Below are positions 19,598 through 64,000 of a stretch of 64,000 nucleotides of DNA, one piece after another. Both the position numbers and the translations under genes were made by a program. Position 1 is the stretch's first letter. Each line of letters begins with the position of its first letter. Below the pieces are notes generated by a model. That model was given only the letters and a program-made list of their open reading frames with translations. It had not been told where the DNA came from and ran no database searches. This DNA is from Histomonas meleagridis 2922-C6/04-290x (Eukaryota; Protista; Parabasalia): NCBI GenBank assembly GCA_020184695.1, contig JAANOX010000156.1, positions 58,855 to 122,854 on the forward strand, in the 5' to 3' direction.

Positions 19598-20330
19598 TTA
19601 GTAGCCACAAGAAAAAACATTGCTTTGTATAACACCAATTAATCTGTCATGCATTGAGTTAATGAGGTTATGAATTTCTAAATAACTAGTTAACCATCCC
19701 ATGTATTTTCAATTAATGAAATTAATTCATCAATTGATTGTGGCATAAGTTCTTCTACTCTCCTTTCCAAAATTCCCCATAAATTTTCGATAGGATTTAT
19801 ATCTGGATAATTGGCAGGCCAATTAGGAAGAACATTCCAAAACTCGTTCAAATAATTCATTGTTTCATTACATGTATGAATGCGAGCGCCATTTTGCATC
19901 AAATACCAATTTTTAGCACCATTCGCCTGATTAGTGCTTGGAATAAGAACTCATCAATATAATCTATCGCATTCAAAGTTCCACAAATTGAAATTAATGG
20001 TGTATTATATCTCTCAGATATACCACCACCTTTTTGTTGTAATTTGGTTTTCATCTCAAAAATGTTTTCACCATTTCTCAATTGGTTTCTGATTTTCCGA
20101 ATAAATGATCTTGAAATGCCTGGTTTTTGCGTATATTTGTGTATCTGTACACCCGCGGATTATCTTGGCCATTACTTTTTGACTTATTTCTACCATGTAC
20201 TGTGGCATTACCTGATTTTAAGAGTTGTCTATTAAAAAGTGTTACTTCCATGTGGTCAGAGCTGTTCTATCGTTGAAGTAACCTTTTTTGAAAGACTTTA
20301 TAATAATAAAGCATATTCAAATAATCTCAT
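19598..20330 (-). mobile_element. Tc1/IS630-family transposase relic
   Basis: QNGARIH...WPANYPDINPIENLWGIL, then a shifted tail NLINSMHDRLIGVIQSN...Y*. Several frameshifts; second catalytic Asp appears as Asn. The upstream limit is approximate. Confidence 0.85.
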
Positions 20331-32569: not shown

Positions 32570-33064
32570 ATGAGTCAAAGAAAAGCAAAACCTCATATAC
32601 GAGCTAAGTTCAGTCAAGAAGAAGATGAACTTTTACTCCAACTAATTGGAGATCAAGAATACCCTGATTGGAGTCAAATTGCAAAACATTTTCCTGCTAA
32701 GAGTCCAAGACAATGTCGAGAAAGATATAAAAATTATATTAATCCTTCTTTAAATCGGACTCCATGGTTACCAGAAGAAGATGAAATTTTATTAATGAAA
32801 CATAGTGAAATAGGTCCAAAGTGGGCTCAAATAGCATCGTTTTTGCATGGTAGAACAGATGTAAGTGTTAAAAATCGTTATCATTCATTAATCCGCCATA
32901 AAAATCAATTAACGACAAAAGTTCCAAAAAGAATATCAACGAAAATCGATACTGATATTATTGAGAAATTTTTTCAAAGTATTTCTTTAGAGGAATCATT
33001 GTTTTCCTTTATTTCAGATTCTGATTCTTATAGTGATCTAAGTCATAAAAGATTTCCACAATAA
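32570..33064 (+). CDS. R2R3-type Myb DNA-binding protein
   Basis: FSQEEDELL...W...RQCRERYKNY; WLPEEDEIL...GPKWAQIA...RTDVSVKNRY. Confidence 0.93.
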   Translation: MSQRKAKPHIRAKFSQEEDELLLQLIGDQEYPDWSQIAKHFPAKSPRQCRERYKNYINPSLNRTPWLPEEDEILLMKHSEIGPKWAQIASFLHGRTDVSVKNRYHSLIRHKNQLTTKVPKRISTKIDTDIIEKFFQSISLEESLFSFISDSDSYSDLSHKRFPQ

Positions 33065-40567: not shown

Positions 40568-41164
40568 TCACCAAACATATCCTCCAAAATTTGGAAATGT
40601 ATTTGTCATTAGACTAGGTTGATAAAACGATGAATAGTCCGTTGAGGTGTTATGAAAATTCAGAACTTTCGTTGGTAATTGATTATTTAACATTTTATCA
40701 TTTGGATTAGGAGGGTCAAAACTAGATATAGGTGGGAGCTTTGGTTTTGATAGTGCGCTCTCTTTGAGTGCTGTGTTTTCTTGAAATCCAAATTCAAGTT
40801 TTGCAATGGGAATCGAATTTTTAGACTTTAATTTGGTCCACCTATTTTTCATGCTGACGTAAGACCTAGAAGGGAAGAAAGTTTTGATTTGAGCCCATTT
40901 TGTTCCAAGTTCATTGACTTTTTGATAAAGAAGTTGATCTTCATCTTCTGTCCATGGATCTTCCTTAATTTCTGGTGAAAGGTAATTTATATATCTTTCT
41001 CTGCATTGCCTTGCTTTTCGATTTGGAATAAATTTGGATATTATTGACCATTTTTGACCGTATTTTGAAACAAGAGAGATTAATAGAGAATCTTCAGCTT
41101 CTGTGAACTTTTGGTGTTCTCCTGGAAAAAGAGGTCGCGTTGTAAGGCCTGGTGCTGGAATCAA
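40568..41164 (-). CDS. R2R3-type Myb protein; no in-frame ATG at the 5' end
   Basis: KFTEAED...W...RQCRERYINY; WTEDEDQLL...KWAQIK...SMKNRW. The ORF opens at TTG, with an in-frame TAG 8 codons upstream. Confidence 0.75.
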   Translation of the reverse strand: MIPAPGLTTRPLFPGEHQKFTEAEDSLLISLVSKYGQKWSIISKFIPNRKARQCRERYINYLSPEIKEDPWTEDEDQLLYQKVNELGTKWAQIKTFFPSRSYVSMKNRWTKLKSKNSIPIAKLEFGFQENTALKESALSKPKLPPISSFDPPNPNDKMLNNQLPTKVLNFHNTSTDYSSFYQPSLMTNTFPNFGGYVW

Positions 41165-61212: not shown

Positions 61213-61686
61213 TAACAAATCTGATTTTATAAATATTAAATTAAAATAAATTTAAATTTCATTTTCATTTCATTTTTGGTCCAAACTATGGACAACAATA
61301 AGTTATCGAATAATTACGTGATGAAATAGGGACAAAAGGTCGTATTGCAACTAATGCTGCAGAAGGAAGTTTAGGTATTTTGATAAAGTAAAGAAATCAT
61401 CTGAAAGACATTATTTCAAGTTCATTAAGGAAGCCGAAATAACTAATAATTTATCTAATGAATTCATTAGATGATATATAATATATTCATTATATGAATT
61501 CTTATATCATGATATATCATGAATGATTTTTAAAATTTCTTTAAAATTTATTTTAAAATTAAACCGGTTCAAATAATTACGATTTGTAATCTAGATTGAA
61601 AATTGACATGAATTTTTGTAAACTTGTTAAAATTGACAATGAGATTAATGTCGAAATAGTTTCTAAAATCTCTTTTATGTTCTTGT

Positions 61687-62928
61687 TTATTTATTTATAT
61701 ATTTCATGCAACTTTTTAGTTCTCTAAGAAGGTAATCATCTTGTCTTCTTCTTAATGAGGTAAACCATCTGTTTTTACACTGTAAATGATCTCTTTCATC
61801 AAAATACTTTGAAATTATTTTCCAATGGTGACCATGAGAACGCACTAATTTATATAAGAGATCATCTTCTTCTTGTGTCCATAGTTTCCTTGTTCTTGTT
61901 TTACGCATAGCTTTAATTTCACCTGTCATATCTAAAAATCAAAAAATTGAATCCCCATCCATTTCCAAACACAGTTCTAAACGTTCACGAAATCTCAAAC
62001 AAAGTTTGTTAATTAGGTCCGACGATAAATTATCCCAAACTTTTTTGATGACATCTATCAACTCGTTTTTGGTTTGTGGGTTCGCCTCGGTAACAGCTCT
62101 TTTCATGATAGCCCATAGTAGTTCTATCGGATTGAGATCTCAATCCGGAGAATTGGCGGGCCAATCCGCAATTACATCCATAAATCTTTCCAACCAATCC
62201 ATTGTTGCAGCAGAAGTATGCGAGAGTGCTCCGTCCTGCATGAATAACCATCCATATTCACCATACCTTTTGTTCATTTCTTCGATAAATCCAGACTCAA
62301 GAATATTCAAAATATAAGTATCAGAATTTACAGAACCATCAATAATTACCAAATTGCTCTTAATATCAACAGAAATAACACCAAAAATCATTACAGAAAC
62401 AAAAAATTTCGTTTCATTAATTACTGAGTTTTTTGTAAAATCACCTTTTCTAATCCAAACCCATCGGTTATCATTCCCAAGGACAAACCTGGATTCATCT
62501 GAAAAGGCAATTTTGTCAAGATAAAAATCTTCATTCAACATTCTTTGGCAAAATTTTTTACGATTATGTATTTGCTCTTCTGTCAGATCTTGTTGATGTT
62601 TTGGTGGTTTAAAATGAAAATTCATATCATTTCTGAGTTTCAAAATATATTGTGGTGTTACTAATATACCAAAATTATTTTTAACATCTTCTGGCAGCAC
62701 TCTTGAAGGCTGTGCTGCATCTAGTAATGTATTAATCTCAATAAATTTTTTAATATCTTCTGTAATTTTTGGTTTAGCACCTCTTTTTACTGGTGATAGT
62801 ATTTTACCAGTTTCATTGTATTCATTTATTACTCTTCCTACCCTATGGCTACCCACATGTAGGATTTGAGTTATTTGTTGGTGCGTACAACCATTTTGAT
62901 AAAGATCAACAATGGATTTTTCGACCAT
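61687..62928 (-). mobile_element. Tc1/IS630 DD34E transposase in frame with a C-terminal Myb repeat; two internal stops
   Basis: From ATG 62928: HTH, GAKPKIT, FSDESRF, VMIFGVI, QDGALSH, WPANSPD*DLNPIELLW...GDSIF*FLD MTGEIK...WTQEEDDLL...W...RDHLQCKNRW. Stops at 62140-62142 and 61939-61941 are in the same frame. Confidence 0.85.
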
Positions 62929-63224
62929 TTTTTTAATAAACGGTATTAAATCGAAATATTCAATGACTTGACTCAATGTCGAATTATTTGAACAAGTTTA
63001 TATATAATTAAATTATATAATGAATGATTATTAAAAAAATCATGTGACATAAGAAAATAAGAAGTATATAATTAAATATAATCACATTTAGTCCTATTTT
63101 CTTATACCTGTATCTTAATTTTTCTATGAATTTGAATTAAAATGAAATTTGAAAACACATTAAAATATATGTAAACTGAAAATGAAAAGTCAGAAGCATT
63201 CAATCCGAAAAAGTGCCAATATCT

Positions 63225-63971
63225 ATGAGTCAATACTCAAAATTGCAACAGGTGAAAGATTTCAATTGCGCTAAAATGCTTGAAGCCGGATTCTCATACG
63301 AGAGAATACAGCATTTATTAAGCCCAAAAAGAATTGCCTCAATCAAAAAGGGATTATCATTAGAACACAGGATGGGGCGTCCTTCAAAAATCACTTAATC
63401 AATGATTGATTATACGGAAATGCTTTCATTAACAAATGCCAGGTTCACTGATGGTGATATAGCTTCGGTATTAAATGAGAAATTTTCCACGAATATTTCA
63501 AAAACAATCATTTCAAGAATACGAAGAAAATTAGGTTTTATTTACCGATCTCCTCTTGTAAAGCAAAAGCTCAATGAATTATAAAAGCAGACAAGACTAG
63601 AATTCTGCATTTGGGTTCTTCAATATAAATTTCAATTGGACAATATTGTTTTTTCTGATGAATCGAGGTTCGAAAAATATCCAGACAACACATGGAGGAG
63701 AATAAAACGATAAATGTGGAATGAATCATGTTTCTGTGATACACAGAAATTCGTTCCGAGTATAATAATCTGGGGAGCGATTGGTAAGGGGTTTCGAACG
63801 CCTTTGATGAAGTGTTCAGAGTTTGTCAATGCTGAAGAATACATCAATATCATGATGGAAAGAAGTGATATGTTCACAACATGTGATAAGAAATTCGGTC
63901 ATTTTAAATGGGTATATATGCAAAATGGGGCACCATGTCACATCTTAAGCTTGATATTTGAATCAACTTAA
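63225..63971 (+). mobile_element. Tc1/IS630-family transposase pseudogene, truncated
   Basis: MGRPSKIT*, IRRKLGF, *KQTRLEFC, VFSDESRF, IIIWGAIG, YMQNGAPCH. Three in-frame TAA stops; ends before the third catalytic residue. Confidence 0.9.
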
Positions 63972-64000
63972 AATACAGTTTTAATCTCAAAAATTCAACA

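Follow-up and report, generated by a model that had tools for sequence, protein, structure and literature searches.

Our analysis of a 64-kb stretch of the Histomonas meleagridis genome (contig JAANOX010000156.1, positions 58,855 to 122,854 of the forward strand; this whole stretch is referred to below as the window) indicates that its positions 61560-63000 very probably hold a decayed, non-autonomous Tc1-like cut-and-paste transposon of the DD34E type, a member of a large clade in which the transposase natively ends in a single c-Myb-type repeat. All coordinates are those of the whole 64-kb window, and the element (1441 bp) lies on its minus strand, running from 63000 to 61560. A first-pass annotation of this DNA had proposed that the Myb domain present here lies inside the element and defines a transposon family, and had recommended a search for intact copies that would combine the DDE_3 and Myb domains with shared terminal inverted repeats (TIRs) and TA flanks. 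Such copies were found, as intact open reading frames (ORFs) with the order helix-turn-helix (HTH), DDE, Myb, and with shared TIRs. These observations support the assignment of the Myb domain to the element and to its transposase, inside the shared TIRs. Checked one after another, the sequence statements of the first-pass annotation all proved correct.

Intact relatives and the reading frame of the window copy

Searches with the 262-aa N-terminal piece of the window transposase as a query identified intact homologues whose uninterrupted ORFs (404-439 aa) carry both the DDE_3 and Myb Pfam domains and are 37-64% identical to the query; over all metagenome contigs, uninterrupted ORFs of the same architecture range from 404 to 450 aa in length and from 31 to 64% in identity. 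The alignment of ten intact members shows no variation in the catalytic residues D144, D232 and E267, the last two being 34 residues apart (hence DD34E), nor in W349, W368, W387 and K384 of the Myb repeat. The homologues read straight past the position at which canonical Tc1 proteins end (as does P0017, with ...GGPIKY) into a linker of about 15-20 aa, poorly conserved apart from its consensus motif S-I-S-R-x-L, and then into the Myb repeat; the linker and Myb of the window copy align with them column by column. Mean pairwise identity amounts to 40% for the Myb part, 35% for the N-terminal DNA-binding part and 20% for the linker and tail.

When the Myb piece of the window copy was used as a query, the best matches were the Myb tails of the nearest transposase relatives (72-86 bits), in an order that roughly follows the tree of the catalytic cores, while cellular Myb genes of the window scored about 42 bits. 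Since this Myb matches transposase-tail Mybs first, it was inherited together with the transposase rather than captured at the window locus. In all three respects in which the first-pass annotation had considered its own proposal vulnerable, the outcome was in its favor: the copies do not end at GDSIF, their Myb groups with transposase tails and not with a cellular Myb, and the TIRs are shared. The cellular-type Myb genes of the window (two multi-repeat genes located by tblastn at 32588-32902 and 40838-41107) are tied to the element by domain only.

The reading frame of the window copy runs on the minus strand from an ATG at 62928 to a TAA at 61687-61689 (413 codons) and is interrupted by exactly two in-frame stops, both TGA (62140-62142 and 61939-61941), in agreement with the single protein of about 413 aa with two internal stops that had been reconstructed earlier. 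The ORF at 61687-61929 that encodes the Myb shares this frame; it begins with an ATG, ends with the TAA and gives an 80-aa product with all invariant Myb residues kept. Pfam profiles recognize a paired-like (bipartite HTH) domain in the N-terminal part (PAX with 25.6 bits at a cutoff of 22, and HTH_23), a DDE_3 domain split in two by the first TGA, and PF00249 Myb_DNA-binding in the last piece (E=1e-13, 51.6 bits at a cutoff of 24.4). The domain order in the window frame is, therefore, a paired-like HTH, a DD34E catalytic core, a short linker and a single Myb repeat. The features of the element, in the order in which it is read, are as follows.

62974..63000, minus strand: 5' TIR (element orientation), TA flank followed by AACTTGTTCAAATAATTCGAC...
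62936..62945, minus strand: TACCGTTTAT box, 8 nt upstream of the ATG, with CCGTTT inside (Myb-core AAACGG on the opposite strand)
62143..62928, minus strand: N-terminal 262 codons of the transposase, with the HTH at aa 2-60 and the DDE core to ...ANSPD
62497-62499, minus strand: catalytic D144
62233-62235, minus strand: catalytic D232
62128..62147: perfect 20-nt palindrome that holds the first in-frame TGA (62140-62142)
61942..62139, minus strand: end of the DDE core from DLNPIE... through the usual Tc1 C-terminus ...LEMDGDSIF
62122-62124, minus strand: catalytic E of NPIE
61939..61941, minus strand: second in-frame TGA, in the linker; a sense codon in 10/10 aligned intact homologues (S-I-S-R-x-L consensus motif)
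61690..61938, minus strand: linker, single Myb repeat and short tail; Pfam Myb match at about 61759-61890
61879-61881, 61822-61824 and 61765-61767, minus strand: three spaced Myb tryptophans
61619..61643, plus strand: inner partial TIR copy, TAAACTTGTT..., about 59 nt inside the 3' tip
61560..61586, plus strand: 3' TIR, reading CGGTTCAAATAATTACG from 61565

Judged by its coding sequence, the window copy is a pseudogene, with two TGA stops, one of them within a +6 nt change in the catalytic SPDLNPIE. In fact, no simple substitution accounts for this first TGA, which sits in a net change of +6 nt within the SPDLNPIE codons relative to all intact relatives; the insertion of two codons holding the stop brings the distance between D232 and the catalytic E to 36 in this copy. 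The palindrome at 62128-62147 looks like the product of a template-switch or hairpin-type mutation that perfected a quasi-palindrome. At the SPDLNPIE codons of relatives such as the element at locus L008 there is a quasi-palindrome shorter by 6 nt, and the +6 change in the window copy makes the palindrome perfect. Otherwise the copy retains 63 of the 65 invariant columns of the homologue alignment, two otherwise invariant residues being altered, and its two TIRs differ over their first 23 nt by two mismatches and one indel. The comparison with intact members shows what the ancestral protein must have been, namely a chain of ~410 aa with a paired-like HTH, a DD34E RNase-H-like core, a linker, a three-helix Myb repeat and a short tail. 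The use of TGA as a sense codon in this genome was considered and rejected on the TGA use in window ORFs: this triplet is the stop of 7 out of 19 window ORFs of at least 200 aa, and ORFs of 2617 and 2049 aa are free of it.

The AlphaFold2 model computed from the ten-sequence alignment (411 aa) is compatible with this domain layout. Its mean predicted local distance difference test (pLDDT) score is 81, the catalytic domain being predicted with confidence, and the score dips to 54-62 over the linker (residues 330-350). The Myb tail is modeled as three helices within residues 351-408 (351-364, 368-374 and from 380). Among solved structures the model best matches the folds of full-length Mos1, the catalytic domain of Sleeping Beauty, SETMAR and the Pax paired domains (Pax5, Pax6, Prd). 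Matches to full-length transposases are 335-342 aa long and their alignments span at most 346 model columns, about the length of the pre-Myb part. By sequence the Myb is nearest to c-Myb R1-R3 and to Trichomonas vaginalis Myb2/Myb3, with 1H88, 3OSF and 3ZQC as the best PDB matches.

Element ends and mobility

Inverted repeats flank the unit, as the first-pass annotation had claimed: the arms at 61553-61578 and 62982-63007 are 81% complementary, and the 5' end of the element reads TAAACTTGTTCAAATAATTCGAC. A pattern built from the two arms given in that annotation has five matches in the window at no more than three mismatches, as compared to 1.08 expected from shuffling, but the two exact matches are the element's own ends, from which the pattern was derived, and this result is weak on its own. 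The decisive evidence for the TIRs is different: homologous elements that lie on unrelated contigs have these termini as their boundaries. The window element aligns across all of its 1441 nt with positions 490-1921 of the locus L001 (68% nucleotide identity); the homology stops at both ends, the termini are identical in type and the flanks are unrelated. L001 encodes an intact 411-aa protein (P0001) and has a perfect 26-nt TIR, TAAACTGGTTCAAATAATTCGGCATT.

A TA followed by AAC(T/C)(T/G)G tips also bounds the elements of L008, L002/L003, L015, L016, L017, L004 and L007, the last of which lies on a contig of 48% GC and has a protein product with only about 31% identity to P0001. The 5' terminus of the window type occurs in L009-12 as well (besides L001, L008, L002/3, L007, L015 and L017). 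Overall, the TIRs are ~25 nt long and start with AAC(T/C)(T/G)GTTC, each beside a TA, and all ends examined carry the TA flank. The inner partial repeat noted earlier at 61619-61643 was likewise recovered; its GTAAAC core recurs at a like distance (about 57-60 nt from the 3' tip) in L001, L008 and L002.

The element encoding P0027 (426 aa, from another subclade) is found with at least three different 5' flanks, on contigs that are at least 99.9% identical and diverge exactly at TA/AACTTGTTC (the slash marking the boundary). Three contigs of this element break off precisely at the tip, which is typical of assemblies that run into a multi-copy repeat. Together, the contigs provide direct evidence of recent movement of Myb-bearing elements and of their use of a TA site.

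Some peculiarities of the flanks and ends can be added. A 23-nt direct repeat (61513-61535 and 63014-63036, 91% identical) stands 25 nt outside one end of the window element and 14 nt outside the other; it lies in AT-rich palindromic sequence, and a local repeat apparently surrounds the element. In L017 (221-285 and 1987-2051) the inverted repeat runs 30 nt past the TAAAC tip, to a total of 65 nt, which would be either a longer TIR or a sign that the element is nested in another inverted repeat. In the P0027-type element of L009 a region of about 720 nt (L009:270-991) separates the 5' TIR from the ATG, as compared to about 70 nt in the group of the window element; this region includes a tRNA-like stretch, in which ARAGORN called no tRNA.

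Extent of the family and comparison with known systems

A profile of the ten intact members, searched against 1.84 billion representative proteins, collected 2241 proteins at E <= 1e-30, a number that includes ordinary Tc1 relatives. The catalytic core is followed by the family Myb within 80 aa in 69 out of 164 collected proteins (many of those scored as having no Myb possess degenerate Myb/SANT-like tails or are truncated just past the linker), and at least 57 Myb-tailed clusters (at 50% identity) are present among the best 150 matches listed. A search of a second database found Myb together with DDE_3 in 41 of the best 120 matches, all 41 from ENA, Logan or JGI assemblies. No annotated reference proteome was among the sources of the Myb-tailed proteins found, and no informative neighbor genes were seen in the 8.2-kb locus L018 (on a contig of 8.5 kb). 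The ESM Atlas returned only canonical Tc1 clusters of 330-370 aa. Family pairs for which DNA sequence was available share at most 70% amino-acid identity.

A quick, unrooted maximum-likelihood tree of the cores shows strong clustering of the Myb label (16 changes, versus about 39 in shuffles). The clade of the window copy has 99% support by the Shimodaira-Hasegawa-like approximate likelihood ratio test (SH-aLRT), and the Myb is present in 15 of its 16 members. A separate block of 30 proteins, in which the family hidden Markov model finds no Myb, includes canonical ~340-aa Tc1 proteins and several long-tailed ones. The tail region shows further variation. P0067, a metagenomic protein of 497 aa from a neighboring clade, has a C-terminal bromodomain (PF00439, 24.7 bits at a cutoff of 21.7) in the place of the Myb, and several other relatives have long tails that match no Pfam domain. 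The family profile also picks up, through its Myb part, six proteins of 605-1000 aa (P0052, P0122, P0132, P0136, P0148 and P0153) that are made up of 9-13 Myb repeats in tandem and are devoid of a transposase core.

The element is an ordinary Tc1-like transposon in every defining respect except for the conserved extra DNA-binding domain. It shares with the DD34E elements Tc1 and Sleeping Beauty (Tc1/mariner, ITm) a bipartite HTH, a DDE_3 domain with a 34-residue D-E spacing, the SPDLNPIE motif, TIRs, the TA flank and a single ORF. On the other hand, the family protein runs about 70-110 aa past the usual C-terminus (a G-x-x-I/T-x-Y stop), so that in place of the ~340-aa transposase ending after the catalytic domain that characterizes the Tc1 group, intact members measure 404-450 aa. 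The tips differ as well: Tc1, Tc3 and Sleeping Beauty TIRs begin with CAGT, those of the family with AAC(T/C)(T/G)G. The nearest named matches (NCBI/UniRef) among those listed are Tc1-like transposases of Anaeramoeba flamelloides with DDE_3 and HTH domains, 29-40% identical to the first query sequence (30-32% in longer alignments); unlike the family proteins, they are 222-342 aa long and their precomputed Pfam hits do not include a Myb.

Cut-and-paste transposases with an additional DNA-binding module are known elsewhere, for example in piggyBac, whose C-terminal cysteine-rich domain binds repeats in the element's ends, and in pogo/Tigger elements with CENP-B-type domains, but these belong to other folds and superfamilies and do not possess a Myb repeat. 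The closest functional analogue would be PIF/Harbinger, which also encodes a Myb-type DNA-binding module. According to two reports, the Harbinger Myb-like protein attaches to subterminal sites and carries the transposase into the nucleus (PMC3158080; PMC2836001). In PIF/Harbinger, however, the Myb-like protein is the product of a second gene and the transposase belongs to another DDE superfamily (DDE_Tnp_4 type), whereas here the Myb is fused to a Tc1-like DDE_3 transposase. With c-Myb R2R3 and T. vaginalis Myb1/2/3 the family Myb shares three tryptophans spaced by 19 residues and the K-N-R-W motif of the recognition helix; it differs from them in being one repeat on a transposase and not one of two or three tandem repeats of a transcription factor. 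Full-text searches of the literature outside subscription journals and Repbase brought up no Tc1/mariner transposase described as carrying a Myb, and an earlier description is possible. The literature matches to "Myb" were abbreviations of Myotis brandtii or referred to the Harbinger Myb-like protein, and the text of a 2020 paper on Tc1/mariner phylogeny contains neither of the words Myb and SANT.

The Myb tail, alternative readings and neighboring relics

The classical Myb site has AAC(G/T)G as its core, and most family members retain the K-N of the Myb recognition helix. In the non-coding ends of nine elements (2872 nt, both strands) the motif AAAC[GT]G is found 20 times, as compared to 2.5 in shuffles, an about 8-fold enrichment that was reached in none of 2000 shuffles; its density is 6.96 per kb in the ends versus 0.96 per kb in the coding parts. 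The copies sit in the tips and, in the form CCGTTT, 15-33 nt upstream of the ATG of L001, L008, L007 and L015. The window has this box too: the Myb-element-like TACCGTTTAT pointed out by the first-pass annotation upstream of the ATG does stand at 62936-62945. With its CCGTTTA it is conserved across the family and may be regarded as a candidate promoter element or transposase-binding site. In 19 insertion flanks of 28-60 nt, a low-power sample, AAC[GT]G occurs once as compared to 2.5 expected, that is, with no enrichment.

The motif being enriched in the elements' own ends and not in insertion flanks, binding of the Myb tail to the own ends or promoter is favored over targeting. The role predicted for the tail is to recognize the ends of its own element and/or the box at its own promoter, and such a role is quite possible, if slightly on the doubtful side. 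The Myb would then act as a tethered second DNA-binding module that reads the AAAC(G/T)G boxes in the tips and the box before the ATG, and it may help to assemble the transposase on the element ends and/or regulate its own promoter. Of the "targeting or autoregulatory module" suggested by the first-pass annotation, the autoregulatory part gains from the enrichment in own ends and before the ATG, while targeting to Myb/M3 sites received no support from the 19 flanks (at their low power). A broader version of this prediction is more doubtful and is offered only tentatively: a large undescribed Tc1-like clade in metamonad-type and other uncultured protists would have internalized a Myb reading AAC(G/T)G at its own tips or promoter, as a one-protein counterpart of the Harbinger transposase/Myb pair, and its decayed copies would add to the high numbers of Myb genes by which such genomes are inflated.

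Several observations weigh against the favored explanation. In other Tc1/mariner elements it is the N-terminal paired-like domain that binds the TIRs, so that the reader of the enriched boxes may be this domain, or else a host promoter factor, and not the Myb. The enrichment is in part the shared tip itself and is non-independent among related elements, and the non-coding ends of L002 and L004 do not contain the strict AAAC[GT]G motif. The intact copies come from metagenome and Logan contigs, and the tree requires at least eight changes of the Myb label, so that a single gain is not established, one ancient gain followed by losses being plausible.

With the same architecture, the Myb tail might instead serve for target choice (host Myb/M3-type promoter sites), chromatin tethering or nuclear import, and not for binding own ends. 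The ordinary c-Myb type of the repeat, near c-Myb R1-R3 and T. vaginalis Myb2/Myb3, which could read host sites, the bromodomain that the sister lineage represented by P0067 has in the same place (suggestive of chromatin-reading tails) and the predicted flexibility of the linker all speak for it. Set against the single AAC[GT]G in the 19 flanks (2.5 expected, in a small sample) and the ~8-fold enrichment in own ends, this alternative, the main rival, appears rather unlikely. Another reading, which applies the seeding of new Myb genes suggested by the first-pass annotation to this locus, would be that the Myb ORF (61687-61929) of the window copy survives the decay as a small stand-alone Myb gene. 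This ORF is intact from ATG to TAA with all invariant Myb residues, and sequencing runs of the same organism labeled as RNA contain 15-54% of the sampled words of the Myb part; the same runs, however, contain 36-42% of the words of the whole element, which is nothing Myb-specific, their RNA label is itself a guess, and an 80-aa ORF after a recent stop is expected from chance decay (DNA runs of the same organism contain 73-77% of the sampled words of the element stretch). A stand-alone gene is, thus, very unlikely.

More improbable still is a copy that remains functional via readthrough or recoding of both TGA codons. Both breaks are indeed TGA, in a frame that otherwise keeps 63/65 invariant columns, but the same triplet ends 7/19 of the larger window ORFs and is found inside neither of those of 2617 and 2049 aa, the first TGA comes with two extra codons in SPDLNPIE, which is length-invariant in all intact relatives, and two otherwise invariant residues are changed. 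Finally, a chance juxtaposition, in the same frame, of a cellular Myb gene and a Tc1 relic could be suspected from the presence of other Myb genes in the window (around 32588-32902 and 40838-41107). It is refuted by the uninterrupted fusion ORF in dozens of divergent clusters, by the column-by-column alignment of linker and Myb, by the location of the Myb inside TIRs shared with L001, and by the lower scores of the window's cellular Mybs (about 42 bits) relative to transposase tails (72-86 bits).

Tc1/mariner transposases serve as the textbook example of a minimal cut-and-paste enzyme, and tools such as Sleeping Beauty are built on them. The existence of a natural and widespread lineage whose transposase has a further, C-terminal DNA-binding module shows that the Tc1 scaffold tolerates, and apparently benefits from, such a domain. 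The lineage could reveal what additional DNA-reading domains do to end recognition, autoregulation or target choice, and it bears on a possible convergence of Harbinger and Tc1 elements on one solution. There is also a consequence for genome annotation: where an AT-rich protist genome has Myb genes by the hundreds, a number of its short "Myb" ORFs are probably tails of dead transposons.

Two other Tc1-like relics are located in the window. One occupies the plus strand at 63182-64000, at a distance of 180 nt from the element, and continues beyond the window end; it is ~30% identical to the first transposase and broken by several TAA stops. Another, on the minus strand at about 19600-20200, has a canonical ...SCGY stop after one frameshift and no Myb, in line with the earlier description of a relic at 19598 with a typical Tc1 C-terminus. 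A TIR-like 19-mer at 19839-19857 falls inside the coding part of this relic and is probably due to chance.

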